DNA of 64,000 bases from Macrostomum hystrix. Lineage: Eukaryota > Animalia > Platyhelminthes. This document shows positions 29,201 through 55,632 of the stretch, piece after piece. Below the pieces are notes generated by a model, which was given only the letters and a program-made list of their open reading frames with translations, did not search any database and was not told the origin of the DNA. Numbering within the stretch: position 1 is the stretch's first letter; each line of letters opens with the position of its first letter. Location of the stretch: positions 1,054,001 through 1,118,000 of the forward strand of contig CATNEN010000002.1 in NCBI GenBank assembly GCA_950097015.1, written 5' to 3'. A program made the translations under genes and the position numbers.

Positions 29201-31430
29201 CGCGATCACACAGGCGAGGCTGAACAACATGCCAGGGCCTCAAGCGAAAGAATGTCGCCCGACTGATCTTTACTCCAGGATTCTCTCGTTTGAATTTGGC
29301 ATACAGCGCCTCGCCTGCGTAAAAATACGATTTTAAAGTTTAGAAGCGCTCTTTTACGCAGAACAATAGTTTACTGTTTACTTTTAGGAAGCAGAAAATG
29401 ATATTAAAATTGTGATTTTATTTACTAGTTTGAATCTCTCACTGCACTACATATCTGTTTCCAATTTAAGTTCCTGGACTACATCTACGCTCGTAGAATG
29501 TATATTTGTATAACTGTTCATAAAATATACTAATTGCTTGCGTTTTGTAATCAAGCCCAGCGTACCATGTAATCAATGGACTTCATTTACCTGTGGACAC
29601 AAGAAAGCGCTTCTGACGTGTCTCCTTGGTTTTCTTGCCAGCGATTACCACGAATCGCCTGATGAAATGCTTCTTCGATGATGTCGAGCGGCTATTCTCA
29701 TCATCGCACCAGAAGGCTTCTACAGATTCGTGAAGGGCTTTCGTGACTCGTCTGACAGGCGCCTTCAGAACCTTCGGGGACGCACCAAGCATCTGCATGA
29801 CAGCCTTTCGCTTATCTGGTGGCGAGGCTTCACAAATTTCTCGGATGCTTTGACGAATATGCTTTTTGCGCCGCAGACCAGCTAAGGTCTCAACCAAGAA
29901 ATTGCTCCGCCTGTCCAGATCCTCACAGCGCCGTTCAGCAGCAGCCGTTGCTTGATGCCCCCTCAATAGCTGGACACGCAGAATGCTGATCCGCCTTTTT
30001 GCTTCAATCAGCTCATCATGCAGATTTCGAGCCTCTCTTTTAAGCTTCGTGCGCTCACGGACACGTGCTGCCTCAGAACGAGAAATTGGTACGCGCTTAG
30101 ATTGCTTAGGCGGATTATTGCCTGCGGTAATTCTACTGGTCTTCTTTTTGTGGTAGTAGGCACGCTGATTTTCAAGGTAGCTGCTATGTGACCCAAAGTT
30201 CTTTTTAATGTATCTATCCTTTTTTGCTCGCAGCTTCTGCCGCTTACTAAGTGCAAAAGGCTTGCCCTGCGACGAGAGGATGAACAATGGTTGTAAGCAT
30301 GCTTTACACGTAGATCCTGTATTAACATCTTAAATCCTTAGTGCATAAACAGAGAACAAACATTCTTAAAATAATCTTTATTTCTTGACTCTTCCAATTG
30401 GGAGGAAATAATATTTATATTCAAATATTCAAAAAAATGTAGTGATATAATTTTTTGCACTATTTTGGAATAAATATATTTGTCTATAATGCATAAACCT
30501 ATTGAAATTTATTGAGGCCTATAATTTGAAATCTGTTTATGTCGATGCAAAATGAAAAAAATCATTTGCAATAATTAAAGTAATCAACATTTTTGTTAAT
30601 TTTCACGCTCCAATGCACAATGGGTAATTGTCTAGCTTGGTTACAGAACCAAAATAAAATGTATACAGACATTTACTTACAAATACATCCCTTATTTTTT
30701 AAATATAAGGTTTTGAGAAAATAAAAAAAAAGCATTTGATCATTACATTCAGCTAAACTTGGCTATAAAATTTCAGCACATTTTTTGCACTTAGTGTAGT
30801 GCTAGTGTGATTACAGAAAGTTAGTTTTGTGCTAAAATATTATAACTTTTGTCGAAATGCCAAATGTGATTAAAAATAACGCCATTTTATGCACTTCTAC
30901 TAGTATACGGAAAATATATAACTGCAGTACTGATGTGGAAGTAGTTAAATTATGTGGAAGTGCAGCATTATTTTTTCTATTTTTCTTCTTTTAAGTACGA
31001 ATTAAAACATGAAGACTTATACGGGCCAAGAATTGGGTATTTTTATCTGTAAAAGTTCTCGCCAAAAAAATACTAAATACAATTTCAATTATTAGATGAA
31101 GCTATCATGCTTAAAGTATATGACTATAAGTTTAATCTAAGACATAAATCTGCTTTATAACTTCAGTTTTTTCTTCTGAATCTTTTTAAAAGAACTAATG
31201 GCGGCCATTTTGAAACCGTGACTGATAGTTCTTTTTTAAATAATCGCCTCGAAAAATATCGCTGAATATTTTAAAAGCAATTGTAAGCAATTACTTACTG
31301 CTTAAAAGGCACCTAAAGCATTTTATTTTTCTAAATAGTATATTATTAGAAATACTTAATTGAAAGCTAAGGTGAAAAATAAAAAAAAATTGTTTAAATT
31401 CAATGGTCAGCCTAAAATTGAGACGAGGCC
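26236..31430 (-). mobile_element. DNA transposon, Sola2-like, possibly autonomous
   Basis: Imperfect TIRs GGCCCTGTCTCAAAGCTTAG (left) and GGCCTCGTCTCAATTTTAGG (right, reverse complement); 4-bp TSD GACT at 26232-26235 and 31431-31434; encloses a transposase. Confidence 0.65.
27741..30266 (-). CDS. DDD transposase (Sola2-like) with C-terminal RG repeat and PHD finger; spliced, start exon unresolved
   Basis: Exons 29591-30266 and 27741-29314 join in phase (ACA G|GC GAG) to give 749 open codons. Catalytic motifs VDFSENY, ISDSPSSQYR, HGKGAADGVGAAVKR. Also LYAKFKRENPGVKISRATFFRLRP and a PHD-like C-x4-C...QCEGCPRWFHHDCV...FFC. Confidence 0.8.
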
Positions 31431-35082: not shown

Positions 35083-35679
35083 GCTGCCGAAACCAGCGGC
35101 CTGAAGCAGAATGGCAAATTGGACGGTGCATTGCTGATTTTCATAGCTTCATAGATTCCAATTATTGCTCATAATTTCTCGCACCGATCATTATACAAAC
35201 ATATTAACATTTCAAATTAATTTTTGTGTGCTACTGATGTGCTACTACTTAAAGCAATGTAAGCGAATTCAACCTGGCAAAAACTTTTTGGCATGATTTT
35301 CTCATTGTAAAAGTAATACACACGAGACTGGACTGCAACAATTGCACTTGCAACAAAATACTTCAAAGTATTTTTTTACGGATGAAAAAGAAATGCTAGT
35401 TTAGAGCTTATGGCATTTAACAATAGCCATATGTGTTTTGAAAAAATTGTAGATTAGATTGAAAGCCTAATGCTTTGACTATTTTAAAGAAAACTGTGTA
35501 TCTGCCCACTGGGCAGCTAAGGTGCGAATTGCGCAAAATTGAAACGCCACACCGGATAAAAGTTTAGCAGAGGGCGCGTTTAAAAGTGCACCATGTGGCC
35601 TCATCGCATGTCAGACATTTGGGAGCTTGGCGTAAAAATGTAAAATGTCACGTAGAGAGCCGGCCGACTCTACGTGATA

Positions 35680-35860
35680 TTGGTCGCTGTCACACGGATA
35701 TTGGACGCTGTCACACAGATATTGGTCGCTGTCACACAGATATTGGTCGCTGTCACACAGATATTGGTCGCTGTCACACGGATATTGGTCGCTGTCACAC
35801 AGATATTGGTCGCCGGCACACAGATATTGGTCGCTGGCACACAGATATTGGTCGCTGGCA
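35680..35860. repeat. 21-bp minisatellite
   Basis: Unit cacagatattggtcgctgtca, abutting a SINE A fragment. Confidence 0.95.
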
Positions 35861-36052
35861 CACACTCACATGGGTGTGCGCATCTGCCCTGACTTTCTCA
35901 TCATCAGGCAGTGTAAAATTAATTTCCTCTGCCTTAATTATTGGAGCACGACTCCCTCAAGCCACACCCCAGTTGAATATGGCTTCACCGCGTTATCAGG
36001 CTCAGGGACCTTGGTGTGAGCTGCAAAACGCTTTAGACCGCTCTACCACTCA
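35858..36052 (-). mobile_element. SINE family A, 5' part
   Basis: catctgccctgactttctcatcatcaggcagtgta and the tRNA head ...gctttagaccgctctacc match the other copies. Confidence 0.7.
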
Positions 36053-36379
36053 CTTGCTGATACTACTTTTAGTAGACATATACTTTTCGCTTCGGAAATA
36101 AAGAAGCTACGCATTTATGAAGCTCTATTGAAGCTTCAAGTGATAACTGATTTTCGGAAATTTTAAAGCTTTTATATGATTCTCACTTAGGATCATTGCA
36201 TAAGTTCAGCATAAGCAATCTTGATTAAAAAATAGCTCGTAGCATCGCTTGGTAAATAAAACTAATAAAACTTTGTATTTTATAAGAGCACATTTAAAAA
36301 ATGTTACAGAGAAAAGCGGTTTGGTTATTATAAAAGTTAATCTATAATGTTAGTCTCAGACTAGTGCGCGCACCGATTT

Positions 36380-39360: not shown

Positions 39361-40230
39361 TTATTTGATATAGTTCATCGTCTCCAAGACTTCGGTTCTG
39401 CTGGACACTGAGTTCCGGCGACCACGTCTTCGCTTCACCGCCATGATGACTAGTGCAGACAGCACGAGAAGCAGCAGCAGGGCAACGATTCCTCCAGAAG
39501 CCAAGCCGATTAGAAGCGAAATGCTCGCCATGTCATCGTTCTTCAGGTCCGGCTCGTGCGAGGATGCAGCAGTTGTTGGCGTGGAAGAGGATGTGAATGG
39601 AGATTGCGAATACGAGGTGGAAAATGACAACGAGGAGGTCGAACTCGATGGAGACGACGACTGCATCGACTAAAAACTAAAAAACTAACTAAAAATATGC
39701 CATCGACTATACTTGCATGTGCCATTGTTCTTGCACTCGCAAACTTGATTGCATCCTCCTGTGGCTGGAAACAATTCGGTATTCACTGGCGTTAGGTTCT
39801 CTTTTGAGCTATTCAGCAGTTTTGATTCCATATTGAGTGGCACTTGAACAATTTCGTTGAGAACGACCTTAAGCCGGTCCGAAGTACACCGAAGTATTTT
39901 TGTTCCAAGGGAAGCTGCTCGGAAATTCGGCGGGAGTATCCACACCAAGCGGAATACCGTTCAGAACCCACCAAGTGCCACTCGAGTTCTGTAGCACTAC
40001 GGTTAGGGTAAACCACTCGCCTGAAACAATACTTATTTTCGCTTTCACATCGACCTCCACCGTATTAACCTTTCCATTCGCCGATAGCCAGATGAATATA
40101 GCTGCGAGATAGTTTTCTCTATTCCATGACACAACCAAATGACCGGTGCCAAAATTCACCAGGCCGAGAATTACGGTCGCATCTGTGCAATGGGATATGT
40201 TCGAAAATCGATATCGATTCGAAGTAGCTC
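39361..40230 (-). pseudogene. Disrupted Crumbs-like paralog (LamG, partial EGF, Ser/Thr stalk, TM)
   Basis: SSFPWNKNTSVYFG and NEIVQVPLNMESKLLN align to 47112 (GRFPWGRNTSFHIG, DQIVKVPLHTKSELLN). Frameshift near 39875 and stop near 39685; TM segment in 39361-39666. Confidence 0.7.
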
Positions 40231-42685
40231 AGATCCGCTTCCCTCAGGTGGTTGGCCTAGCCGATTTTATGTCTTTAAGTTTGTCGGTGTCTTATCAAAC
40301 GCATTATCTACCTGAATTTCTGTTTTCTCTGTTTTCACACGGTGCTTTAGTGGAGAAAAAGTTCCAGAGTAAAAACTAACGGCGAAGATAGTAAAGCCTC
40401 TTATCACTTTTCAGGTAATTCAGACAATCGTTTTTTGACTTGGCTATGCTTTTCTCGCGTCTAAATTACTTGCTAATCAATCGTTAATGAATTTAATCAA
40501 ACCCGTGGCTGGCTCCATGCGAAGGCTGGAAATCCCACTGCAGTGCTGATCCTAAAGTGGGAGGGGATCAGGCCTTACTCTTCCCAGTGTCACCCGCCCT
40601 AGTGATGATTGGTAGCTTGTTTGTGGTCCGATTGGCCAAGGTCCATTGCCTACTCTATTTCTAGGCAAGGGAGTATTAGGGTAGGGACTACTTAGAGTAG
40701 TTCTGCAACCACACTCCATAACTAAAACCTAACGAGGCTAATATTGAGGCCAGAAAGAAAGAGAATAATGGCCGCTAGAGGGACTCTATGTTGGGCATTT
40801 TCTGGTTGTCCTGGTCAGTGCTGGAAGCAAGGTCTTTCGCATAGGGGAGTTATTTTTTACATTACCCAATCCTACCTCAGCTTGGGGTGAGGAACTTGCT
40901 AAAGTTTAATTATAGAGGCTCAATCCCCTCTTACAAGGTCTGTGCCGCGTTTCGTTGGTGAAAGCCTAACCTCTCAAGAATGCGGCTCTGTGTGAAAACT
41001 GTACTGCTGTTAGTAGGGATATTAGAGTTTCATTATTGCTTAATATATTTTATTATTTTGCCTGCCAGTAAACTCCTCTTGGATCGCAGTGACTCTTTAC
41101 TCACCAGACTGCCTGCTTAAGTGAGCAGGGGAAACAGACAAAAGAATTGGATTTAGCTATTTGACAACCCTGAGCAGTGACTCAAAACTGGCAATAATTA
41201 TATTAGCCCAATGTGGTCTAAAGTAAGAGCAAATACCCTGAGTCTGGCTCAATCAAGTCGCAGCTGTACTGCAGGTCAGGTATCGGTCAGGCATGACCCA
41301 AGGGTGTCTTCTTCGTAGGAAAAGCGATGGGATTGTGTAGGGTAGAAAACACGCATCACGCGCGTGAACCGTGATGGAAAGTCTCCGTTGACCCAGCCTT
41401 GACCATCCAAAGTGCACAACCGAGCACTGCCACGTTCTGATTCGCACGACGCGGCACAGTATGCTTGGGGGTGGGTGAGGTAGCTTGTATTAGATAATAG
41501 TAACGTAATAGGCTCATTAATTATGCTTTTGCTAAATAATTACAATAATTATTTATTAAAACACACATCTTTAAGGTTACAACGAGAAGATAAATAAATT
41601 CAAGTTACATTTGGGAAAAGTACCAAGGCAAGGATTTGCGAAAATTTTAAAGGAATTTTTAGAATAAGCTTTCGTCTCGCTCGAGCGAACCAGAACAATG
41701 GGAAGCGGAGGTGGACGTTTTGAGGGATAGAACGGATAGATCAAACGGATGAGTTATCGAGTCGCAAGTTTCAACCTCCCAGGCTGGCCTCGATCAAGGC
41801 CTCCTTGAAATTTTATTCGGTAAACTGGCAACTAGTGCGCAAGTAAAATAGTAAAACTATTTATAAATAAGTTTAGAAACATTAGCTTGATTGCCTAAAA
41901 ATTTACAATTATGTGAACTGAAAATCATTCCCTTGAATGTAATAATCTATTTGTGCCTTACGCCTTTGAGCCGACGTCTGATTGTTGTGGGAACCGAGAA
42001 CTATTTTAACTGAAACGTACTTTACGAAAGTTTTATACCGCTACCAGAAAATTGACTTTTGAATTGATCAGTTGAACTGGCTCTCATTTCGCTCGTCTTT
42101 TTCGTAGCTCTTGTTTATGTCGGGAAAGTAGGTCTGATTTCCTTAGTCAAAAATTGGTCAAACACCGCTCGTGGAATTTTCTAAGAAATCCGACGAAACG
42201 AAAAATGCACGAAAACGTAAAACTCGAAAAAAAGAAATATTCTGAATCAGTTAAAAACGCGAACCTTGGTTGGACATTGGCGTATAATTGTAAAAATTAC
42301 GAGCTCCATCGACCACGCTTGACGTCAGAGAAACTATCGACGTTTTCATTCGATTAGGCTTATTCCACTATAATATATTATAATTATTAGTGTTATCTTA
42401 GAAAAAAATCAAAAGATAAAAAGTAAAATTTTGCGTAAACAATCGATTTATCATACGAAAGCCTCATTTGGGTACCTCGCATCAAATGTATTTTAAAATA
42501 GATAAATAAATGAATACATTCGAAATGAAGACTGTTACAGTTAAAAATACAACGAACTCGTTTTAAGTCCATGCATTGTTAAAGTAATAACAGTCAGGCC
42601 TGCAATTAGAACCGAAAAATTGCAACAAAAACGGGAAATTAGAGTTCAAAGTTTCTAATTTTTTGAAGTCCCTATTATCTACACA

Positions 42686-43037
42686 TGGGGTGGAGGCAGA
42701 GTGGGTTAACGCGTTGCCTCTCGCATTTGTGTCCTGAAGCTCGATTCCGCGGCGAAGCCACATTTTTTGGGGCGCAGCCGCGGAGAGAAGGCTTGGAGGC
42801 TTGTCTTACAAGGGCTTAGCCCTTGTGGGCTAACCTCCAAGGCATTGTGAAATTTACACTTGACGACGAGAAAGTCAGGGCAGATGTACACACCTGTGTG
42901 AGCGTGTGCCTGCGTACAGTATCTGTGTGCGTGTGTGCTCAGGAGTCAGCGAAGTGGGCAGAATTGTCTCCTCGCTGGCTGAGGGTCTAGTGTCACCAAA
43001 TGATGTGCCCACAGCCCTCCTGCAATTATTATTATTA
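42686..43037 (+). mobile_element. tRNA-derived SINE family A, full length
   Basis: A-box ggaggcagagtgg, B-box gctcgattcc, (ATT)n tail; ends about 60 bp from the stop of the mini-Crumbs gene. Confidence 0.85.
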
Positions 43038-43097
43038 TGCGGTTATCTACACATGTTCTGAACATATTTATTCACAATATGATTCCATGCAGCAGGT

Positions 43098-44447
43098 TCA
43101 AATTAATCGTTCGTCTTTCGGTGGTCGCATCGGATGACTCATTGCCATGCTTGTGTCTCTGCCCGCCTGCACCTCTCGTCGGCTTGGCCTATACGCTCCG
43201 GAATCTCGACGCCTCTCTCTGATGATCTTAGCGACCACGAAAGCAACAATCGCGATAATAAGGATGGCAATTATGATGCTAACTGTGACGCTAATTATTA
43301 GAGTAATATCTAGTCCCGGCTGTAGCTCAAACTCGGTGCAATTTCTGCCGGAATACCCTGACGCACAGATGCAGTTGTAATCGAGTGACTCCGGATGCTC
43401 GAGTTCGCCAGTAAGAGTGCAATTCACAGTGTTGCTCTGACACGCTTGGCAAATATTGAAGCTCTGGCATCGTGTTCCCAGATAATCTTGGGTGCAATTG
43501 CATTCATAATTTTCGACGCCTGGCTTGTTGGAGCAGGTACCCCCATTCTGGCATCGTAGTTCCATGTCCAAATTTTCGCAAGTGTTCCATTCGCTCTTGC
43601 ACATCGAGTCGGGTGTGTAGCCCCGGGTGCAGTTGCATCTTTCCAGCAAGTCCCACTGACGGTAGATGCACATGCCGTTCGGCTCGCAAGGACAAGGCGC
43701 CTGACGACACCCAGCCTCCTCTGGCAGCCTGGATGTAGAGTCCAGCCGCAGGTAGTCCGTGATGTTCAGCAGATCCGATTTCGAAGAAAGCGGCATCGAT
43801 ATTATGTTATCAAGGCTGACATTGGCAAAGCAGCCCCTGAATGTGCCAGCTATTTCAATCGATGTACTATTGTCCCAAGGAAAATAATAAGTGTAATTTT
43901 TCAACAGCTCATCCTGGATTGTTTCACCGTTATATACTAGCGATCCATTACTCTCTGCAGTCATTGTTAAATGGTGCCAGGAGCCGTTCGCAACACCTGG
44001 AGCCGGACGGATGAGCTCTTCATAAGCCAGTTCGCTAACGTTATGTCCTTCGGGATTTCGCAAATATATTAGTCGCACTTTAACTTCATCAGCTGATTGA
44101 ATCTGGACCGTAAGGGTTTCGTTTCGCTGATTGACAATTGAGAACAGGAAAGAATTGCTTGCTTGAGATGTGCGAAAATTCAAATTTATTTGTTCCAACA
44201 GAGTCTTGTTGGCACTCGCTGAACCGGCGAGATGAAACCGAGCTGAGTTCGATTCATTAAACGTGCCGCTTTCCGGTGTTGAAGAAATATCGAAATCTTT
44301 AATGGCCAAATATGATGATGTGTGGACACTTCCAGAAAACAACAAGATAACTGCTATAAACAGGCGAGGCTGCATACTAATAATTCTTCTGTAAGCTTGA
44401 GCTTCGTCGCTTTTAGCTGACAGATTTCGATCGCGCCTGAGTAACAT
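43098..44447 (-). CDS. Short Crumbs-like type I membrane protein: signal peptide, LamG, 3 EGF, TM, Crumbs tail
   Basis: Tail RRRDSGAYRPSRREV...RPPKDERLI has the Crumbs FERM-binding GxYxPSxxE and PDZ-binding ERLI motifs. Three 6-Cys EGF repeats; LamG motifs (LNFRTS, WHHLTM, FRGCFANV). Likely start at the second Met (MQPRLFIAVILLF). Confidence 0.9.
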   Translation of the reverse strand: MLLRRDRNLSAKSDEAQAYRRIISMQPRLFIAVILLFSGSVHTSSYLAIKDFDISSTPESGTFNESNSARFHLAGSASANKTLLEQINLNFRTSQASNSFLFSIVNQRNETLTVQIQSADEVKVRLIYLRNPEGHNVSELAYEELIRPAPGVANGSWHHLTMTAESNGSLVYNGETIQDELLKNYTYYFPWDNSTSIEIAGTFRGCFANVSLDNIISMPLSSKSDLLNITDYLRLDSTSRLPEEAGCRQAPCPCEPNGMCIYRQWDLLERCNCTRGYTPDSMCKSEWNTCENLDMELRCQNGGTCSNKPGVENYECNCTQDYLGTRCQSFNICQACQSNTVNCTLTGELEHPESLDYNCICASGYSGRNCTEFELQPGLDITLIISVTVSIIIAILIIAIVAFVVAKIIRERRRDSGAYRPSRREVQAGRDTSMAMSHPMRPPKDERLI

Positions 44448-47111
44448 GCGCCAACTTAAAGAGATTGTCCTCAGGTAGCGTATATTTTAGCCTCGATTAG
44501 TACGCACCTCGGGGCTGACTGCACCACGTAAGCGCATGCACATTTTTTGCAATGCCTTGCTTAGATAAGATACTAAGCACATACCAATTTGCTTGTGGCA
44601 CATACCAATCAAGTTTCATAAATTCGCCATTTGCTGTGCTTGGCACAGAAAAAAACACTGCCACTATCGCATGCCTACTTGGCTTGACGCAGCCAGTTTA
44701 GATGTATTTCATTACATTTCACTTCAGTCCCAATTATTGTCTTCCTTTAGTCCAAAGCGGTGCAGGACAACAAGACGGCTCCGCTGCGGCAGTCGAGACC
44801 GTCGGGTCTACGACATAAGCCAGACAGCCGTTTGCCAGCTGGAAACGAGGCCCTGTATAACAAAGCCCGTCAACTATTCCGCACCTTAAGCGGCTTCAGG
44901 TGGATGACCACGACTCCTTATTTCCCTACAGGTGGTCTCGTCTCGTCTCGGAGCAATAATATCAGAGTTTTCGCAAAAAAATAATAAAACCCATGTTTTT
45001 AGTCCGCAATGAATAAACTTCGCATTTGCTCGTGAAAATGTACTCAGACTATGGGCAAAAACAGTTGTTCATACCTGAGAATATTTTGCGAGTCTTATGA
45101 AATGATCGTCAGCGACTAGTAAATGATAGGCTTTATGAATGAAGAAAGGTAGCAGCTACGAGTACTAAGAGTAGCTCAGATTTCTACGTGTGAGGACACC
45201 ATATGAGCTGGATCGGCTTGTAGTCCACGAACTCAGATGCAGAAGAAAACAAAGCCTTTACATTTTCCAGCTTAGATTAAACTTTATCAATAATTTTGAA
45301 TTTTATCAATATCTTGAGGAGAGCATGACAACCGTTGATAAGGATCGTGATGCATGCTCCGACTCCGGAGCATGCATCGTTTCGTTGATATCGTTCAGGC
45401 GCTGCACTCTGGCAGGTCTTCTCGCGGTCTAACAGACATTGCTCATGTCGCACGTTGGTGCGGGAAGCCGCTCTTACACATCCTTCTCAATTACTTTGCC
45501 AACGCCCCCATCATGCCGCTTGGTATGACACAGCAGGCGAAAATTTATGTCGAGGCTCTTTCCAACAACACACGGAATAAGTATCTGATTATCGGAAAAC
45601 GTATTCTCAGTGCCAAAGTGTGTTATCAACTCGCGCCTCAGAATGTTGCTAGTTGAATTACACTTTTCTGACGCTACAGAACTCCGGAATTGCTTCCACA
45701 CAAGTAAAGGTGTGAGTTCATATAGCTCTCTTCTCCCATAGCTTCCTATATAGCTCCCATAGCTATATAGCTTCCTTTGACCTTTCGATAATTATATTTT
45801 ATTTAATCCAAGCTATGCTTGTGTTGTGTTTGCTTACTTGTGTGGAGAGTAGAATGCTCAACGTGCTACTTAAAGTAATGACACGGGTAAGTGTAAGCAA
45901 TAACTGATGATCTTTTTTAGGACTCGAATGCTATTTTTAGACATGGCTTTACGTTACTTAGGAATATTACATAATGGCAAAACGGTTCTTAACTGCAGTT
46001 TTTCCAACACTTCCATAAATGGTAGCATTCACCTGAAACTCCCCAAAATGCAGCTGAGCAAAAACGCTTGACCCCAATATTTCTGATACAATAAAATTTG
46101 CTTTGCGTGTTAATGAATTGAGTTCTTTATAGCCAGCTTTAGTCGTTAACGAGATCCGCATATCGTCGACGCATTTGAGAAAGGCTTTGTATACAGAGCT
46201 GTTGCGCACAGGTTACAGAGCTTACAGGATTTATTGATTGAATAAAGATACACTTTGCGCTTCAGACATAACAAAGATGACACCCTTCCTGAGGAACTAG
46301 GCAAGATTTTAAGCGATTTTTATTGGGCGCACGTTCTATTGCGAATTCCGAGTTCGAAGACATTGTTAAGGATTCTTATTCACTCTCGACATCGGTCAAC
46401 CCATAGATAAAGTTTGAGCACAGTACGAGCGTAGTGACAGCGGCCAGTTCTACCACCCTCAGACGACTAAGGAGAGGCTCCGCAACACCTGAACAAGAAA
46501 CAAACACTCGGCCGATTAAGAAGCTGAAGCAGTAGAAAGTAACCTGAGTAAGTGCCTACATTTTCTAATCCTGAGTTGTTAACTAATTGGTATGTGAAAT
46601 TGGTGAAATACGATCAGTAGCATGGCTTCGATCATTAACTTTTTAAGTCAGTCTGCTAATTTTTCTATAAAGTCTTTGAATACTTACTTGAATTTATTTT
46701 AAGAAATTGTTTTCTTGATTGGAAAGCCCAGAGAGCCTGTTAAAAGCAAATTTCACAGTACACTCCGACCTTGTTTGATATTTCATACCAAATATTTCAG
46801 CTCTTTTTCTAAGAGTAAATATGATAAGCTATGCACGCCGGGGCTTTGCGAAGATCACTGTATATCACTAAATTTAGACCTGAGTCTTGAGTCATGTGTG
46901 GCTTTTTATCAATAGATATATTGAATTTTTGTACGTTACTGAAATGACTTGGAGATATGACCACACATAATGCTGACACTTAGCCGCCCTTAAAAAGCCT
47001 GCCTCTTATCGCCAAAATCACCGACCTTGAATATCGAATGATAGACCAGGCACTGGGACAAGCATTGAAAGTCTACGGCTAAAAAACACATTGCCTAAGA
47101 TTTAGACCAGC

Positions 47112-48257
47112 TTGGCTAGTCCAATTAACGTCAAACTTCAGATCAGCATGTCCATTCCACTTCTGATGCTGGTGCTAGCGGCAGTGGCAGTCCGAGCGGA
47201 GGTAGCCACCTTCAAAAGAGATAACTTCGCATCCTACAAACTCCTTAGAGCGCCGAACGCTTCGGAGCCGTTTCTGAAGCAATTTGAGCTGGAGTTCCGA
47301 ACCTCTGCTAGAAGCACATATTTTCTGATTTTTTTGGAAAATGATAACAACGAAGATATCATCATCGACTTTTCTAAAGCAAATGTGACGCTTCGTATTA
47401 TTCTGACTTGGAATGTAAACAATAAGTCCACGGTAACAAAAATCTACATGAAGGAACCAGTCATCAACGACGGAGAGTGGCATCACCTGAAAATGCAGAC
47501 AGAGGGCGGTGGGCAGATCGTGTTGGACGGTCGGTTCGTCGAGCAATTGCCAAGCAACTTCACTGGACGATTTCCATGGGGTAGAAATACGAGTTTTCAC
47601 ATCGGCGATGATTATCGAGGCTGCATTGCCAATGCGAGTCTGGACCAGATCGTCAAAGTGCCGTTGCACACAAAATCGGAGCTGCTAAACCAAACGGACT
47701 TCCTGAAGACTATCGAAGTGAAGGACTTGCCAGACTCTGAACCCGGCTGTCGGCAGCAAGATTGCCCCTGCCTAAACAGCGGCGTCTGCATCTTTCGGCA
47801 ATGGGACCTGCTTGATCGGTGCAACTGTACTCGAGGATACGAGGGAAGAACTTGTCAATATGAGTGGGACACCTGCAAAAATCTTCAGACTGGACCACCT
47901 TGCCTCAATGGAGGCACCTGTTCCAACCGGCTAGGCTTGTATAACTATCAGTGTTACTGTGCTTCGGGATTTCTCGGAAAAGTCTGCCAGAACACTAGCC
48001 CCTGTCGATCTTTGCCCTGTCAGAACGGAGGCCTCTGCATGATATCCGGCGATCCGGAACGGCAGGAAACTCTGACTTACGCTTGCGAGTGTCTATCTGG
48101 CTTCACCGGAACCAACTGCACTGAGGTGGCCAGCACACAAGCACCAGCTCAGGACATTGCGCATATTATTATTCCGATAGCGATTGTGCTCTCGCTGTGC
48201 GGTCTGGCGATGGCTCTCGTTTTTTCCTACTTAATGTTTAGGCAAAGGAATCAATGA
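47112..48257 (+). CDS. Crumbs-like paralog (LamG, 3 EGF, TM) with almost no cytoplasmic tail
   Basis: Signal MSIPLLMLVLAAVAVRA; LEFRTS, INDGEWHHL, YRGCIANASL; CIFRQWDLLDRCNCTRGY is shared with 43098; ends FRQRNQ* right after the TM. Confidence 0.9.
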   Translation: MASPINVKLQISMSIPLLMLVLAAVAVRAEVATFKRDNFASYKLLRAPNASEPFLKQFELEFRTSARSTYFLIFLENDNNEDIIIDFSKANVTLRIILTWNVNNKSTVTKIYMKEPVINDGEWHHLKMQTEGGGQIVLDGRFVEQLPSNFTGRFPWGRNTSFHIGDDYRGCIANASLDQIVKVPLHTKSELLNQTDFLKTIEVKDLPDSEPGCRQQDCPCLNSGVCIFRQWDLLDRCNCTRGYEGRTCQYEWDTCKNLQTGPPCLNGGTCSNRLGLYNYQCYCASGFLGKVCQNTSPCRSLPCQNGGLCMISGDPERQETLTYACECLSGFTGTNCTEVASTQAPAQDIAHIIIPIAIVLSLCGLAMALVFSYLMFRQRNQ

Positions 48258-49066
48258 AGCAATCTTCATTTCAAGTTTAATTATTATCGATTGAATTTTT
48301 TGCTGCGATCAATTTGCTTTGCCTGTTTTCTAATCAGTACTAAATCGTAGGACAATCCTGACTAGCAGTCTTAGTTGACAAAAGCAGGACCTTAATCCTA
48401 GAAATGTTTATGGTCTCCTTGATTGCCCCTTAATTGGCTTCCAACTCCATATTAAGCGTATATTTCGACTCAAATAAGTCTTTCACGGCGACAGTAATTA
48501 GTTATTAGCAGTGCGTACCTTTCATTTAAAGCTGTAAGAATGGTTGAAGTAAAGAGTGAAAATGTAAAAAAATGTTTTACTGTGGAAAAACGTTTACTGT
48601 CCCACTCCCAGTGAGTTTTAATTAATCCAATAATTATACGGTATTCCTTGATAACTTACTAAAATAACTTTTAAAATTACTTTCATAGGTCATTGCTTAA
48701 TATGAAACCGATTTTACAAAATTCATCAGTTTTCACTGAATTAAACTATAATAATCATATAATCAAAACAATTTTCATGACAATCGAATCATTCTCGATC
48801 TTCACGACTTAGCCATTTGCGCGTTCTAAGTTTCTTTTTTTATATTTTTAGGTGTTTCGAAAGACAACTCTATTAAACAACTGGACTCGAGTGAAAAACG
48901 AATTTTTCACTTTCGACAGGGGTGTCCCTTTTGACTGTTGCTGTGTACACGCTCGTATAGATTCATTTCCATAAGTAGATTTTATTATTTCTGTCAGAAT
49001 TCGAAGTGAAGTGTCACCTAAGAACGCCAGAATTGGTAGGTGGTTAAATTTTAAAGCAGCGGGGGG

Positions 49067-49236
49067 TTGCAGCCCAGAAGCTATAACGATGGAAGCTATA
49101 ACGAAGGTCTAGGGTTCGATTCCCGACTACATTGGAGCAATTAGTGTCCTTTAGCAAGACGCTTAACTCTGCATTGCTTCAGTTCACCCAGCTGTTAAAT
49201 GGCTGCCAGCATCAGCTGGGGGTAATTGAGGGTGTG
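49067..49236 (+). mobile_element. SINE family B head and core (matching tail at 50420-50545)
   Basis: B-box gggttcgattcc followed by gtcctttagcaagacgcttaactctgcattgcttcagttcacccagctgttaaatgg, as in 55312-55632. Confidence 0.75.
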
Positions 49237-49933
49237 TAATAAAATGAATGTCCTAGCTGGAGCGTGAGGAATTTAAAGCTAGCGACTATTCACTATTCAC
49301 CGGGGTCGGTGTCCTACCAATCGTTTCAATAGCAGCAGGGAATCTGGAATTAAATAGCGTTAGAGACTGGTAGCGAGCGAAGCGGAATAGATAAGCGATG
49401 AGACCCGTGTCGTCCTTCGGCCCGGCGAAACTCCCAATGAAAAAGAATAACACGTCCAGTATGAACGCGAAGACTCGAATAATTTGATTAGGAGTGAGTT
49501 AATTGGCTGTGACTAAGATTCCAGATACGAATAGGGAATTACTCTGAATATAGTTTACTTGACTTAAAAGTTATACTGACAGAATAGATGTTCACATGGA
49601 AATAAATTATAGCGCGCTCACAGTGAGAAGCAAGTCTGGTCTAACAATTTGGATACAACAATTTTTACTTAACTGGCCTACATCCGCGCCCTACTCTTCC
49701 CGAGAGGCTCCGGTTGTCTCTGCTTTCAGCGCTGCCCCGACAGATCCTATCGGTTGGCACTCCTTCTGCCTGACGGCGGAGTCTCCGAAGAGAGCACGTA
49801 CTGACTTCGACAACAAGCGCCTATCTAGACCACCCTTGTCAGCGGCGCACTCTCAAGACGCGTAGCGCCGAAAGCTACCTAACTGAACAAGCGGAGTGTG
49901 GTCGGGCGGGGAGGGACAAAACAAGTGGACTAG

Positions 49934-50072
49934 TTTGCACGTGCTTCTCACAGTGTGAGGCGAATTGCGGAGAACGATAATTTGCACGTGCTTCTCACAG
50001 TGTGAGGCGAATTGCGGAGAACGATAATTTGCACGTGCTTCTCACAGTGTGAGGCGAATTGCGAAGAAAAAG
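49934..50072. repeat. Three tandem 47-bp repeats
   Basis: tttgcacgtgcttctcacagtgtgaggcgaattgcggagaacgataa starting at 49934, 49981 and 50028. Confidence 0.95.
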
Positions 50073-50419
50073 AGATAATTTGGACTACAAAAACACGCTT
50101 CGTTATATAGAGTCATTTTAACCCCAAATTAGGTCGATCGGCGAGGTGGATGCCTGGCTGTAGCTTGAGCCAAGGCGACAAATCGCAGTAGACTTGCGAC
50201 CGCCGTTCTGAGCCCCGGGGTCGCTTTTTGCCGAGGGTAGACAGGTAGTGAGGCCGGGTCGCTCGCTGATTGGCCGGGACCGTAGCCCAGGGGTAGCGCT
50301 CGCGGGGTGGTGGGCGTCCGTTCCCCCAGCTGGTCCGGCCCGGCTTGGCGTGGGTGAACTCTTAGCAAAAACACGTCTAAAAATAAGTACTGAATAATAA
50401 CACGGGCAAACAAGCTGAC

Positions 50420-50545
50420 ACTACAGGTGGGTGCGTCGTTTGTTCAGTCCGCGGACTGAACAGTGGTATGCAGCTTTCAGATGCACCGCGCAATAGCTGC
50501 GGCTGTGCTGCCTGCGGCACATCTGGGCAGTTGTAATATTTTTTT
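50420..50545 (+). mobile_element. SINE family B 3' tail
   Basis: cagtccgcggactgaacag...cagatgcaccgcgcaatagctgcggctgtgctg is the reverse-complement homolog of 55350-55445. Confidence 0.7.
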
Positions 50546-50948
50546 ATGATTACAAAAAATAATATTTACATTTTGTGTATTTTTATGACAGTTGAGCTTT
50601 TATTTAAGCTCATTTTAGACAGAGCGCGGGATGCTGGTTCGAAATATGTAAGAAAAGTTTCACGTTTCAAATCAGAAGAAAATGGGCAATGTAAATGTAA
50701 AAACTGTCGAAACAAATATAAAAACAAGCTCATGTGATTCTCGGATATTGTCTGTCGGTCAGTGCCGAGTCAGAAAAATATAGCGAGTTTAAAATAATCC
50801 CGATTAAAATGTACTGAAGAATTGAAAGAGAAAAAATTGCCTTTATTTAAAACAACTCCAAATCAAGGTATGAAGCTTGATATATACTTTGAGGATTGAG
50901 GAGTCACTAATCATTGAAAAAAGTCTGACATTAAAATCTAGCCAAATG

Positions 50949-51482
50949 TTACTTCTTATTCTTCATGAATAAATAGACCACCAGACCTACCAAGCCTGCA
51001 GAGATAATAATTCCGAGAGGAATTGTGAGTCCCAGAATGAGTCCAATCGGTACGTCATTGTGTGTACAGTTTTTCACAGTGAAACTGCTGGAATAAGGTT
51101 CGATTAGCGGGGCATACAGGTGCAGAATATGACTGGCGTGCATCTCAGTGCCATTGGTTTTCTCTCGCAGAGTCACCTGCACAGAAATTAGGTCTCGCCC
51201 GGTCAACTCAGAATTATCCTTAGCTACAAATGGATCTTGCATGCTCAGCAAATAACCATTCGGATATGCTGCTTGAAACTCCACTTCCAGTAGCTTTGCA
51301 GATAGATCATCGTCGTTGGGTGTTTGGACCAATCGCAGCGCGCCCTGTGTATCTCGACTGTACGAATATGTTGCTAGTTTTGTCCTCTGGGCGCATCCGG
51401 CTCCGACTAGTAACGCGGCAAGCAGGAGAAACCTTGGCGCAGCCGCAAGACTTCTTCGTGCCATCCTGCAGCCAGTTGACAC
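50949..51482 (-). CDS. Internally deleted Crumbs-like paralog (signal, N-half of LamG, TM)
   Basis: Signal RFLLLAALLVGAGCA; ATYS...LRLVQTP...LLEVEFQAA aligns weakly with the paralog LamG start; jumps to KNCT (last EGF Cys) and the TM; ends MKNKK*. Confidence 0.65.
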   Translation of the reverse strand: MSTGCRMARRSLAAAPRFLLLAALLVGAGCAQRTKLATYSYSRDTQGALRLVQTPNDDDLSAKLLEVEFQAAYPNGYLLSMQDPFVAKDNSELTGRDLISVQVTLREKTNGTEMHASHILHLYAPLIEPYSSSFTVKNCTHNDVPIGLILGLTIPLGIIISAGLVGLVVYLFMKNKK

Positions 51483-52836
51483 TGTGACACTTTGGATCAG
51501 CGCCAGTTCGTGAATTGTCTCACTTTGTTAATCAAACATTGCATGGCATTATGCTATGCTGAAATGTGACGCCTTTAAATGACTGGAGCGCACACAGAGT
51601 TGCTCTGTTATCTCGCCGCTCCTCTGCAGGGTTGATTGATACGGCCTGCTTAAAAAAAACTTAAACAGACTGTTTTGTCTGAGACAGTGACGAAATGAAT
51701 AAAGAATGTCAAACAAGGACACAAATATGACCGAATTCGTGCATATAATCGACTTTTTTAGACCTGACTTATCTATCTTACCTGACTTACCTATACAATA
51801 TCAGTCTTCGATATAGCCATAAGTCTATGCATGAGTGTATCAGTGACGCCAAGTGAAATCTAGAACGCTCTGTGATCTTCGTGCGAAGATTTAATTTTTA
51901 GCAATGAAGACAACTTAATTTAGCTTTAGGGCAAAAAGGACTGCACGATCATCTGGCCACGTAAACAATATTAAAGTCCTGATTTCGACATGCTTTCGAT
52001 GGACAGTTGCAATTAGTCCTTTTATAAGATCTCATAGTGGTCTTTAATGATTGCGATGTTTCAAATCTGGTACGACGAAAAACCATATACACATTTTTAA
52101 GAAACAGTTATTGTGCAAAAAATCTTTGTCGAAATCGATTAAATCAAATTAATTATTAGTTTCAACCACGTGAAACTTTGGGATACACAGGTTTATTTCA
52201 TTTCGAATCATTTGTATTAAGCTTAGATAAAAATTTACTATTTTAATCAATAAAGAAAGCTTTAATCGCTGATCTCTGTCCTTAGTCTGACTTGACTGAT
52301 CAGTAGAACTACCAAGAGGGGGCAATTTTTTATGCTGCACTCAAACGGAGCAACGCAAGCACACGAAACTCAAGAACACGTGCCAAAGTTTTGTTGCGCA
52401 TCTTCTGAAAAAAGAATCAAGTCGCCAGCTCAAGATGTGTATTTCATACACCCATATACACAAATTAGCACTGTGCCTCAGTGCGGCCTTGCCAGGCCTT
52501 AATTTTTATCAGCATGTCACCCGAATGTACCTGCATCATCCCCATCTTTGGTGGTCACCTACGTTAATCTAGACGGATTTGCTGGACCTTCAAGGGCTAC
52601 AACAGGAGGAAATAGGCCACTATGGACACCCTGACGCGAAGTTCTCCAATTTCACTGATCAATCTATAATACTAGGCGCAGCTCAACCACAGTACACCAT
52701 CGTATGGCAACCATCAGTCACCACCCAAGGCTGTTAGCATTCAGGTCCTGTAAAAATGTTCAGAAAAACCCCTCTTGGTATAAAAACGGGCAGCAAAATT
52801 GGTAGTCCTACTGTTAAATCTGATATAAGCTAGAAC

Positions 52837-54036
52837 TTAAACTTTATATTTTGGTGTGACTGGATTATTAGTTCCTTTCTTCCGACCTTTCAACACAACT
52901 ATCAAACCGATGGTTGTTAGACTTATTAGTAAAATGGAGCCAAATGTCACGCATAAGATTATGATGAGAGCAGTTGGGTCATGGCTGCTCAAGTCGGGAC
53001 GTGGGACAAACTCGGTGCAATTCTTCCCCCTGAATCCTGATGCGCAGCTGCACATGTAACTTATAGAATCCTGGCGTTCCTCATCGCCATAGATAATGCA
53101 GGTGCCTCCATTTTCGCACGGATTATATGGCCTGCAAGGACTGGCGTTTTGACAGCGTTTTCCGACAAATCCCGAGGCGCAGATGCACTGAAAGCTCTCT
53201 AATCCAGGTACATTGCGGCACGTTGCATTGTTTAGGCAGGGCGGGCCACCTTCCAGGTTCAAGCAGGTGTCCCATTCGCTCCTGCACATTGAAGCAGGAG
53301 TGTATCCGCGAGTGCAGTTACAACGATCCACCAGATCCCATTGCTTGTAAATACAGGCTCCTTTTGGCTCACACGGGCAGGGAGCCTGGTGACAACCAAG
53401 TTTCTTAGGCAGATCTTGAAGCGCGATGGCCTTCAAAGAGTCAGTCTGATTGAGTAGCATTGACTGAGCACTCAATGGCACCTGGATGACGCCATCTAGA
53501 GTAACGTTAGCAAAGCAGCCACGGAAAAAATATCCGAAAGCTAACATGACGTTGTTTTCGTATCGAAAGCGTGCAGTGAAGTTGTTTGGAAGGCGACCTG
53601 CCAGTGGCTTTCCATCCAGATGCAGCAGCCCACCGCTCTCAATCGACATGGACAGACTGTGCCACTCGCCGTCGGAGATGCCCGGAGCTGCGATCTCCTG
53701 CATGTACCAATGCTGGCTCGAACTATGGTCATTCGTAGCGTTCCAAAATAGCATCAATGTCAGCTTGTCGTGACCGTTTAGTTTGACAGAAAGTTGCTCC
53801 GATCCATCATTTTTTGCGTAGAACAGATTGCCAACCATGTCGCGCTGGGAAGTTCGAATTTTCATTTCCATCGTGCCCAAGAAGGGAATATTCGCGCTTG
53901 GTGCTCTGAGCAATTTGTACATGGCCATGTTGCTGGAGATAAACGTGGCTGTCTCTTGGCCAGACGACTGTCCCGTCAGTTGAAGCAGCAGAGCTATTGT
54001 AAGATAGCTCCATTTGTCAGTGCTAGAGCGTTTCAT
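52837..54036 (-). CDS. Crumbs-like paralog (LamG, 3 EGF, TM) with a short divergent tail
   Basis: YKLLRAPSANIPFL, ISDGEWHSL, FRGCFANVTLD, CPCEPKGACIYKQWDLVDRCNCTRGYTPASMC (near-identical to the 43098 EGF1); tail KGRKKGTNNPVTPKYKV*. Confidence 0.9.
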   Translation of the reverse strand: MKRSSTDKWSYLTIALLLQLTGQSSGQETATFISSNMAMYKLLRAPSANIPFLGTMEMKIRTSQRDMVGNLFYAKNDGSEQLSVKLNGHDKLTLMLFWNATNDHSSSQHWYMQEIAAPGISDGEWHSLSMSIESGGLLHLDGKPLAGRLPNNFTARFRYENNVMLAFGYFFRGCFANVTLDGVIQVPLSAQSMLLNQTDSLKAIALQDLPKKLGCHQAPCPCEPKGACIYKQWDLVDRCNCTRGYTPASMCRSEWDTCLNLEGGPPCLNNATCRNVPGLESFQCICASGFVGKRCQNASPCRPYNPCENGGTCIIYGDEERQDSISYMCSCASGFRGKNCTEFVPRPDLSSHDPTALIIILCVTFGSILLISLTTIGLIVVLKGRKKGTNNPVTPKYKV

Positions 54037-55311: not shown

Positions 55312-55632
55312 ACATAATAATAATAATAATAATAATAATAATTGATTACACCTGCCCCAATTGGGTCAGATGTGCAGCCGACAGCACAGCCGCAGCTAAT
55401 GCGCGGCGCATCTGAAGGCTGCGTACAGCTGTTCAGTCCATGGACTGGGGGGACGCCACACCCACCTTCAATTATCCCAGCTGATGCTGGTACCCATTTA
55501 ACAGCTGGGTGAACTGAAGCAATGCAGATTTAAGTGTCTTGCTAAAGGACGCAAATTGTTCCAGTGGAGTCAGGAATCGAACCCCCGACCTTCAAGTCGT
55601 GAGTCCGACGCCCTAACCACGAGGCTACAACC
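55312..55632 (-). mobile_element. tRNA-derived SINE family B, full length, with CORE-like central domain
   Basis: Minus strand: A-box TAGCCTCGTGG, B-box GGTTCGATTCC, central CCTTTAGCAAGACACTTAAATCTGCATTGCTTCAGTTCACCCAGCTGTTAAATGGGTACC, (ATT)n tail. Confidence 0.88.

Follow-up and report, generated by a model that had tools for sequence, protein, structure and literature searches.

What are the short, LamG- and EGF-bearing open reading frames (ORFs) that lie close together in the 64,000-nucleotide stretch of Macrostomum hystrix DNA analysed here (hereafter the window), and how do they relate to the apical polarity protein Crumbs? A first, sequence-only reading had described five intronless Crumbs-derived receptors, each with a LamG and EGF ectodomain and a transmembrane (TM) segment. 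All five loci were recovered, and their relatedness was far above chance. The count of receptors did not hold, however, as the cluster consisted of three intact genes (A, B and C) and two remnants, the stub D and the relic E. The ORFs of A, B and C were uninterrupted, each encoding a signal-peptide-like N-terminus, a single LamG domain followed by three EGF-like domains, and a TM segment. This is the type I single-pass layout of the Crumbs family, with an EGF-like and LamG ectodomain, and it was absent from D and E. The three intact proteins shared 40-51% pairwise identity, with mutual tblastn E values of 1e-77 to 1e-102. The motif C-I-Y/F-R/K-Q-W-D-L-x-x-R-C-N-C-T-R-G-Y was found in A, B and C only, with F for Y in B, and it was unique to them among the 154 sequences compared. 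The common ectodomain with this motif, previously attributed to all five loci, was thus confirmed for the three intact genes but not for D, which has neither an EGF nor the motif, or for the decayed E.

Gene A, a "mini-Crumbs" (positions 43098..44375, minus strand), had a signal peptide, a LamG domain, three EGF-like domains, a TM segment and a complete Crumbs tail. Its ORF measured 449 aa from the first ATG (44447) and 425 aa from M25. The latter is the likely start, since a 1409-nt RNA contig, colinear with 43009-44417 and without a single difference to the A locus, begins downstream of the first ATG. An AATAAA was located 28 nt past the stop. The LamG domain (residues 54-238 of the 449-aa ORF; 43734..44288, minus strand) was delimited by the envelope of an iterated LamG profile. 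The AlphaFold2 model of A (pLDDT 78.8) was compared with known structures in Foldseek, where this domain matched LG/LNS domains with a probability of 1.0 and TM-scores by target of 0.58-0.66. The three EGF-like domains (43332..43709, minus strand; Pfam EGF), the first of which bears the family-specific motif, were followed by the TM segment (43221..43307, minus strand), a hydrophobic stretch modelled as a helix at residues 357-391. The 40-aa cytoplasmic tail (43101..43220, minus strand) carried the FERM-binding motif G-A-Y-R-P-S-R-R-E and the PDZ-binding ERLI end. In a set of 30 Crumbs tails, 16 positions showed conservation of at least 90%, and the tail of A matched 12 of these, GxYxPSxxE and ERLI among them. 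An ERLI end was present in 30 of the 151 database matches listed, and every one that was looked up by name (20 names, cnidarians to chordates) was an annotated Crumbs. As the sequence-only reading had noted, A alone has a Crumbs tail: the tail of about 37 aa with G-x-Y-x-P-S-x-x-E was found in no other member, and B, C, D and E all lacked the ERLI terminus.

Gene B (47148..48257, plus strand) was positioned head-to-head with A. It encoded 369 aa from its ATG, or 381 aa if counted from a TTG, with an ectodomain and TM segment like those of A and a cytoplasmic stub of 6 aa. Gene C (52837..54036, minus strand; 399 aa), delimited by its ORF and by alignment, also had the ectodomain and TM segment of A, together with an unrelated, non-Crumbs tail of 18 aa ending in KYKV. 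Pfam EGF was matched in C with an E value of 3e-13.

The two remnants were reduced in different ways. D (50949..51464, minus strand) was a 177-aa ORF (171 aa from the ATG) with a signal peptide, about the first third of a LamG domain, a "KNCT" remnant, a TM segment and a 6-aa stub, that is, an N-terminal LamG stub fused to a TM segment. Its ectodomain matched residues 32-95 of B only, with a local score of 73 against 28.5 +/- 4.3 for shuffled sequences, none of which scored as high (0/500). BLAST and hhalign searches with D yielded nothing significant and there was no Pfam match. Judging from its sequence, D is probably a deletion derivative. E (39361..40162, minus strand) was recognised from tblastn pieces (E values of 1e-5 to 4e-7) and by reading the sequence. 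It was a frameshifted copy whose LamG fragments occupied two frames (39878-40162 and 39694-39951). Its EGF1 was interrupted by a stop, and the conserved RGC cysteine was lost. Reading the sequence upstream of E revealed no signal peptide. A separate 101-aa ORF, Ser-rich and with a TM segment, followed the LamG and EGF1 pieces at 39361-39666.

We consider it likely that the cluster represents a family of short, tandemly arranged type I membrane glycoproteins, specific to this lineage and each with a single coding exon, derived from the membrane-proximal module of Crumbs, in which A would be a functional miniature, B and C ectodomain-only forms and D and E decayed copies. It is an unusual lineage-specific variant of the well-known Crumbs family and not a new kind of system. 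Canonical Crumbs proteins (Drosophila Crb, vertebrate CRB1 and CRB2, nematode CRB-1) are likewise type I membrane proteins with a LamG and EGF ectodomain, and they share with A the FERM-binding and ERLI PDZ-binding motifs of the tail. Unlike the miniature proteins, which measure 370-425 aa and have one LamG and three EGF domains, they are about 1100-2500 aa long and have 2-4 LamG and about 20-30 EGF domains. The single coding exon, the tandem cluster with tail-less members and the family-specific QWDL...RCNCTRGY insertion in EGF1 also set the miniature proteins apart. The large ectodomain (several LamG, about 20-30 EGF) that they lack does not define the family, because the accepted members EAT-20, CRB-3 and CRB3 are also without it. 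EAT-20 and CRB-3, like vertebrate CRB3, are precedents for a drastically reduced ectodomain on a retained FERM- and PDZ-binding tail. The comparison was made by description, and no tandem cluster with tail-less copies is described for EAT-20 or CRB-3 in that source (PMC4359734).

How the short form arose is less clear. The sequence-only reading had proposed that the 3′ end of crumbs was captured, possibly as a retrocopy. Between the last LamG and the TM segment, canonical Crumbs has 5-16 EGF-equivalents (median 12) and the miniature proteins three, and they are thus not simply the 3′ end of crumbs. Retrocopy capture is unproven. As would be looked for in an intron-free copy, the coding regions of A to C were uninterrupted and A and B were colinear with RNA contigs, whereas elsewhere canonical crumbs genes take up 5.9-8.1 kb for products of 1136-1626 aa and cannot be translated straight through. 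The earlier description of the cluster as intronless therefore stands for its coding regions, with RNA colinearity for A and B only. None of the five loci had a run of at least 8 A in its 3′ flank. This absence neither supports nor excludes retroposition, because synonymous divergence (dS) between the genes is saturated and such marks would have been erased. Elsewhere in the window, an intact LINE RT/endonuclease ORF was observed at 8143-11982.

It is possible, though we would not expect it, that A is the sole Crumbs orthologue of this species, shortened in place through the loss of its N-terminal EGF and LamG domains and of its introns, and that tandem duplication of it gave rise to B to E. 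The length of Crumbs ectodomains differs greatly, as C. elegans EAT-20 (808 aa) has three EGFs and CRB-3 almost no ectodomain (PMC4359734), and internal EGF loss is required for the short form whatever its origin. Flatworms were also missing from the Crumbs matches looked up by name (0 of 20). However, these came from a list of the best 150 matches, and to be missing from that list is not to be missing from the genome.

Whether the duplicates matter was approached through transcription and divergence. RNA contigs covered B colinearly over 46989-48600, at a depth comparable to or above that of A, while the 2.4-kb spacer between the two genes (44473-46836) had zero RNA depth in four runs. According to these data, A and B form two separate transcription units, each colinear with its RNA contigs. 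Among the outcomes that the sequence-only reading had named as contrary to its own proposal, splicing into one larger canonical crumbs gene was not observed for A and B. Another combined expression of A alone with dN/dS near 1 in the other genes, and its first part was not observed, as B is transcribed too. The RNA contigs carried 26 nonsynonymous and 8 synonymous variants in B. The resulting pN/pS of about 0.95 suggests that recent B variants may be neutral-like and that constraint on B may be relaxed. This ratio partly agrees with the second part of that outcome; between the paralogues dN was 0.51-0.59 and dN/dS could not be used, because dS was saturated. In spite of this divergence 20 of the 22 Cys columns were kept across A, B and C, a sign that the fold has long been under constraint. 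In some RNA contigs, 136 nt of B (47306-47441) could not be aligned, probably through divergence. An intron was rejected as an explanation of this gap, which has the ends TG..AA and a length that is not a multiple of 3. A deletion is probably not the cause either, as the offsets in the records (36 + 136 = 172) fit a divergent, unaligned stretch.

These data bear on a rather doubtful alternative, in which only A matters biologically, while B, C, D and E are duplicates without function or close to neutrality, expressed but turning into pseudogenes. The pN/pS of B and its unalignable stretch agree with it, as do the plain degeneration of D and E and the loss of the tails, no remnant of which was found further downstream of the stop codons in B, C or D. 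However, B and C hold full ORFs with signal peptides, TM segments and all scaffold cysteines although identity has fallen to about 47-51% and dS is saturated, which is unexpected for genes that are long dead. B was transcribed about as deeply as A or more so, none of its 34 tabulated variants created a stop codon, and no inserted or deleted letters were listed within it.

Four observations support an origin of the cluster in the membrane-proximal part of Crumbs: the tail of A, the colinearity of its EGF, TM and tail segments with Crumbs, LamG profiles and a LamG tree. EGF1-3, the TM segment and the tail of A were colinear with the last 200 aa of CRB-1 from the nematode Aphelenchus (30% identity, E 2e-19), the three EGFs of A corresponding to the final three of CRB-1. 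When the LamG of the miniature proteins was compared using hhalign, the last Crumbs LamG was the best match (score 112.8, E 8e-19), with other classes at E values of 1e-12 to 2e-6. A first-round profile made from LamG alone matched the last LamG in six of six Crumbs proteins. Its matches comprised Crumbs proteins and one Saccoglossus protein (P0018) only, the latter belonging to the same 90%-identity cluster as an annotated "protein crumbs-like". Crumbs clusters also ranked first in ESM Atlas language-model and structure searches. In a careful maximum likelihood tree of 60 LamG sequences, the miniature proteins formed a clade (support 100/99) within the clade of last Crumbs LamGs (80/94), and the clade of middle LamGs (100/99) excluded them. 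A quick tree of 144 sequences had been discarded in favour of this one, as a constrained search gave a tree that was 45 log-likelihood units better. The phylogeny thus agrees with the Crumbs origin that was first proposed, but AU tests on the LamG alignment rejected none of the other placements: attachment to the middle LamGs (p 0.23), a position beyond the clade of middle and last Crumbs LamGs (p 0.18) and grouping with non-Crumbs, EYS- or Slit-like LamGs (p 0.18).

The last of these placements is what would be expected if the ectodomain were not of Crumbs descent, that is, if a LamG-EGF unit of EYS, Slit, neurexin or cadherin type had been joined to a Crumbs-like TM segment and tail, or if the tail were convergent. 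We regard this as very unlikely. Pfam LamG scores for the cluster proteins were weak, lying below the threshold at E values of about 1e-3, and the Foldseek matches in PDB were generic LG domains; the LamG fold itself was confirmed by the AlphaFold2 model with Foldseek and by the iterated profile. Against such an origin, hhalign put the last Crumbs LamG ahead by roughly six orders of magnitude, the first-round profile matched nothing beyond Crumbs and the crumbs-like cluster, the colinearity with CRB-1 extends through EGF1-3, and a match at 12 of 16 tail positions is improbable by convergence. A reading in which a single larger canonical crumbs gene, or a set of alternative isoforms, uses these ORFs as terminal exons is hardly credible, as we found no evidence for it, every ORF opens with a Met and a signal-peptide-like segment of its own, the strands of A and B are opposite, and RNA contigs stop near the start codons with no joints to upstream exons and a silent spacer between the two genes.

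Searches for relatives recovered Crumbs proteins but no orthologues of the cluster among the matches listed. Word-seeded searches with A, with a profile of A, B and C and with the LamG region of C found no LamG-EGF-TM relatives, only EGF fragments and one transcript product (P0001), which given the word and length limits of the method is weak evidence. An exhaustive profile search supplied the Crumbs comparison sequences; its best 150 matches were mostly long multi-EGF proteins, and it was thus unable to show short orthologues. Exact matches of six proteins of the window were absent from a collection of 15 billion sequences. P0001 (521 aa; Logan SRR33215984/5) was 31% identical to A over the last EGFs, TM segment and tail, and was the only protein shorter than 700 aa among the matches listed that resembles A and also ends in a Crumbs tail. 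Unlike A, B and C it has an EGF-only ectodomain without LamG, and it is not a member of their family. Vertebrate Crumbs isoforms with altered ends include the secreted CRB1 forms, CRB1-B and CRB3B. These likewise present an ectodomain without the canonical ERLI tail, but they do so through alternative splicing or promoters of one gene, whereas the cluster does so through duplicated genes. Literature searches on crumbs in Platyhelminthes, planarians or Macrostomum, and on intronless crumbs, found no description of such genes.

Returning to the tandem family that we favour, its source would have been the last LamG, EGF repeats, TM segment and tail of Crumbs. The short form may have arisen as a 5′-truncated retrocopy or by shortening in situ, followed by tandem duplication. 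From the motifs in its tail we infer that A is a functional miniature Crumbs, predicted to act at apical membranes by recruiting Pals1/Stardust-PATJ-Par6 and FERM proteins. This would be by analogy to canonical Crumbs, CRB3 and EAT-20, with an ectodomain of only three EGFs and one LamG. Genes B and C have kept the ectodomain fold, with all disulfide cysteines, and have lost the tail, so that they would not signal through Pals1/Stardust-PATJ-Par6 or FERM partners. They would most likely work via the ectodomain, either partnering A in cis or in trans or competing with it, or may be drifting to new ligands. The decoy, adhesion or recognition roles that the sequence-only reading had suggested for tail-less or re-tailed versions are conjectural. 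D and E would be decay products of further duplications. A more speculative extension, which we think unlikely, is that the membrane-proximal Crumbs module was co-opted as a paired system of tailed and tail-less surface receptors. Head-to-head pairs would have been duplicated as units, and fast-changing tail-less ectodomains would tune A-type apical signalling heterophilically or serve polymorphic recognition. This suggestion draws on the B-type pN/pS of about 1 and on the locally hyper-divergent LamG stretch.

Apical identity depends centrally on Crumbs, and what its large ectodomain does is still debated. A complete Crumbs tail with a natural minimal ectodomain, one LamG and three EGFs, would show which parts are kept when the ectodomain is pared down. 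The tail-less copies beside A would make it possible to ask whether Crumbs is modulated by ectodomain-only paralogues, in a genus that includes an established laboratory model. The cluster is also a lineage-specific expansion in a family for which the literature found otherwise describes only one to three copies per genome. Should A indeed be the only Crumbs of this species, it would represent an extreme reduction of the ectodomain in a bilaterian that still has both LamG and EGF domains.

Five related loci were found within 39.3-54.1 kb of the window, and three of them are long uninterrupted ORFs. These intact single-exon Crumbs-like genes (A, B and C, here called minis) are located at 43098-44447 (A, minus strand, 449 aa), 47112-48257 (B, plus strand, 381 aa from a TTG or 369 aa from the first ATG at 47148) and 52837-54036 (C, minus strand, 399 aa). 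They matched each other in tblastn with E values of 1e-77 to 1e-102 and 37-51% identity, and B and C were 40-42% identical to A in a MAFFT alignment. In all three, a hydrophobic stretch resembling a signal peptide at the N-terminus is followed by a domain of ~180 aa, three EGF-like repeats rich in cysteine, a hydrophobic transmembrane (TM) segment and, last, a short cytoplasmic portion. The motif CxYxQWDLxxRCNCTRGY, which the sequence-only reading had described as shared, was borne out in these genes, with F for Y in B, and was found in none of the other sequences among the 154 compared.

The remaining two loci were less complete. BLAST and hhalign detected nothing convincing for D (50949-51482, minus strand, 177 aa, ATG at 51464). 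A local alignment of its ectodomain with residues 32-95 of B scored 73, against 28.5 +/- 4.3 for shuffled sequences, and since none of the 500 shuffles scored as high, D is a true relative. What it retains is limited to roughly the initial third of LamG, a 'KNCT' remnant and a TM segment. In E (39361-40162, minus strand) LamG matches were found in two overlapping reading frames, the conserved RGC cysteine is lost and a stop codon lies in the middle of EGF1. E has no signal peptide upstream, and a separate 101-aa ORF, Ser-rich and with a TM segment, comes after it. As its homologous pieces overlap, leaving no space for an intron, E looks like a decayed copy, and both loci are most simply explained as decay products. 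The proposal of five paralogs is thus partly confirmed: all five loci are related, but the cluster comprises three intact genes, a stub and a relic.

Two inverted repeat pairs, 49103-49220 with 55476-55593 (90% complementary) and 50425-50525 with 55367-55467 (82% complementary), flank the segment containing D and C and could represent copies of a transposon or the borders of an inverted duplication. Between B and D, a 47-nt unit occurs three times in tandem (49931-50071).

Pfam LamG matches in A, B and C (E about 1e-3) all fell short of the curated thresholds, and Pfam EGF was significant for B and C. A LamG profile seeded with the three N-terminal domains and iterated across database matches converged on a set of 147 LamG domains from 51 proteins, with scores of 60-75 bits for A, B and C. 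In the AlphaFold2 model of A (mean pLDDT 78.8), residues ~33-215 form a beta-sandwich, three small units are EGF-like and residues 357-391 form a TM helix. Against solved structures, Foldseek matched this model to the LG/LNS domains of neurexin, SHBG, laminin, agrin, perlecan and CELSR1, at a probability of 1.0 and TM scores of 0.58-0.66 by target. The LamG assignment of the N-terminal domain therefore holds.

Crumbs descent of the minis is well supported by the combination of tail, colinearity, profile, hhalign, tree and Atlas evidence. The 40-aa cytoplasmic tail of A contains G-A-Y-R-P-S-R-R-E and ERLI, and a canonical Crumbs tail with an ERLI end was present in 30 of the 151 database matches. 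Twenty ERLI proteins were looked up; those named Crumbs or crumbs-like included proteins from Nematostella, Lingula, Lymnaea, Dreissena, Argonauta, Diadema, sharks, Steinernema, Aphelenchus (CRB-1) and Gordionus, and those unnamed or "uncharacterized" were from Tubulanus, Branchiostoma, a millipede and Mesorhabditis. A retains 12 of the 16 positions conserved in at least 90% of the 30 Crumbs tails. Its EGF1-3, TM segment and tail are colinear with the final 200 residues of CRB-1 from Aphelenchus (30% identity, E 2e-19), in an alignment that spans the long loop of the last EGF. Crumbs clusters ranked top in both the feature search and the shape search of the ESM Atlas.

The best matches of the first-round profile, built from the three mini LamG domains only, were in six Crumbs or crumbs-like proteins, and by LamG domain map all six fell on the last, membrane-proximal LamG. 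In hhalign, the mini LamG likewise scored highest with the last Crumbs LamG (112.8, E 8e-19), followed by a non-Crumbs set that still includes some Crumbs fragments without the ERLI end (73.9, E 1e-12) and by the first central (65.8, E 1.5e-10), middle (51.0, E 8e-8) and N-terminal (43.8, E 2e-6) Crumbs LamGs. A careful ML tree built from 60 LamG domains placed the minis as a clade (100/99) within the last-LamG clade (80/94). The middle-LamG clade (100/99) left the minis out. Placement of the minis with the middle LamG was nevertheless not rejected by the AU test on the same alignment (p 0.23). Placements outside the Crumbs middle and last clade, or with EYS/Slit-like LamGs, were also not rejected (p 0.18 each). 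A quick LamG tree of 144 rows was discarded due to poor tree search. The suggested Crumbs derivation is thus largely supported, and origin from the last LamG specifically is its best-supported reading, short of proven.

The minis are not simply the 3′ end of crumbs, as had been suggested. From the last LamG to the TM segment they have 143-146 aa, 19 cysteines and ~3 EGFs, versus 215-646 aa and 5-16 EGF-equivalents (median 12) in 28 canonical Crumbs. In profile comparisons the mini EGFs fit those right after the last LamG (Saccoglossus P0018, Steinernema, Aphelenchus) as well as the final three before the TM segment, an ambiguity due to EGFs being repeats. Whichever EGFs remain, most of the EGF run has been lost.

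The single-exon state and the restriction to the parent's 3′ part would fit a 5′-truncated, LINE-mediated retrocopy; shortening in place is equally possible. No poly(A) runs were found in the 3′ flanks of the cluster genes and no tail remnants, which is uninformative because the saturated dS implies erasure of such marks anyway. The window contains an intact LINE ORF of 1279 aa (8143-11982, minus strand), located where AT skew is extreme (-0.49); it encodes endonuclease and reverse-transcriptase domains and, at the C-terminus, a zinc finger. An exon at 4088-4744 (minus strand) matched the N-terminal region of PI4-kinase (PI4KA, E 6e-12), and therefore multi-exon genes adjoin the single-exon cluster. 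Other ORFs include one of 500 aa with a C-terminal PHD finger (27741-29243, minus strand) and one with about a dozen tandem DIGRCHT heptads, a 21-nt tandem repeat (35586-36101, plus strand).

Contigs from public runs were mapped to 42700-48600, which covers A and B, with depth taken from four runs. A single 1409-nt contig from run X5 was colinear with 43009-44417 and spanned the entire A coding sequence from M25, with 0 differences; B differed from X5 at 15 positions in about 1700 nt. M25 is the probable start of A, since this contig stops short of the upstream ATG (44447) and M25 directly precedes the signal-peptide-like segment. B had colinear contig cover from 46989 to past 48600. Depth was zero in all four runs across the spacer (44473-46836), which argues that the data are RNA and that A and B form two distinct units with divergent transcription. 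Splicing into a larger crumbs gene had been a concern, and no joints from A or B to upstream exons were found in these contigs. Contigs from runs X3 and X5 showed a 136-nt skip in the B LamG coding region (47305 to 47442), whose ends (TG..AA) are non-canonical. The offsets in the record (36 + 136 = 172) suggest that 47306-47441 is too divergent to align and not deleted; a divergent allele, a tract of gene conversion or a close paralogue might account for it. Just 3′ of A, a repeat at 42700-43093 had many loose ends and an X5 depth of about 2500-3500, compared with 43 for A, and resembles a dispersed repeat or a piece of a transposon that is abundantly transcribed.

Between pairs of minis, dN was 0.51-0.59 and dS was saturated, so that no dN/dS ratio could be given. 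The retention of 20 of 22 cysteine columns in all three indicates that the fold has been under long-term constraint. The 34 B variants in RNA contigs, pooled from three organisms or strains and possibly also near-identical paralogues, comprised 26 nonsynonymous and 8 synonymous changes (pN/pS about 0.95). None introduced a stop codon, and no inserted or deleted letters were listed inside B. This ratio fits relaxed constraint or diversification, and weakens claims of conserved B function.

Word-seeded searches recovered no relatives with the mini architecture (LamG, three EGFs and TM), none of the window proteins was present in a 15-billion collection, and no literature on such genes was found. 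Among documented short Crumbs proteins, the closest precedents are EAT-20 of C. elegans, with 808 aa and three EGFs, and CRB-3 (PMC4359734). Crumbs tails are established to bind the Pals1/Stardust PDZ domain and FERM proteins (PMC4359734). Judged by its motifs, A should act like other Crumbs proteins: it would be apical and of type I, and in its tail ERLI would bind the Pals1/Stardust PDZ domain and the juxtamembrane motif FERM proteins. B and C would be unable to make either contact. Given that they have A's ectodomain scaffold in common and that transcription is seen for B, their likeliest role would be ectodomain-mediated binding of A or its ligands, as partner or competitor, with gradual loss of function as the alternative. 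The cluster is real, and it represents an unusual form of the Crumbs family that is specific to this lineage.
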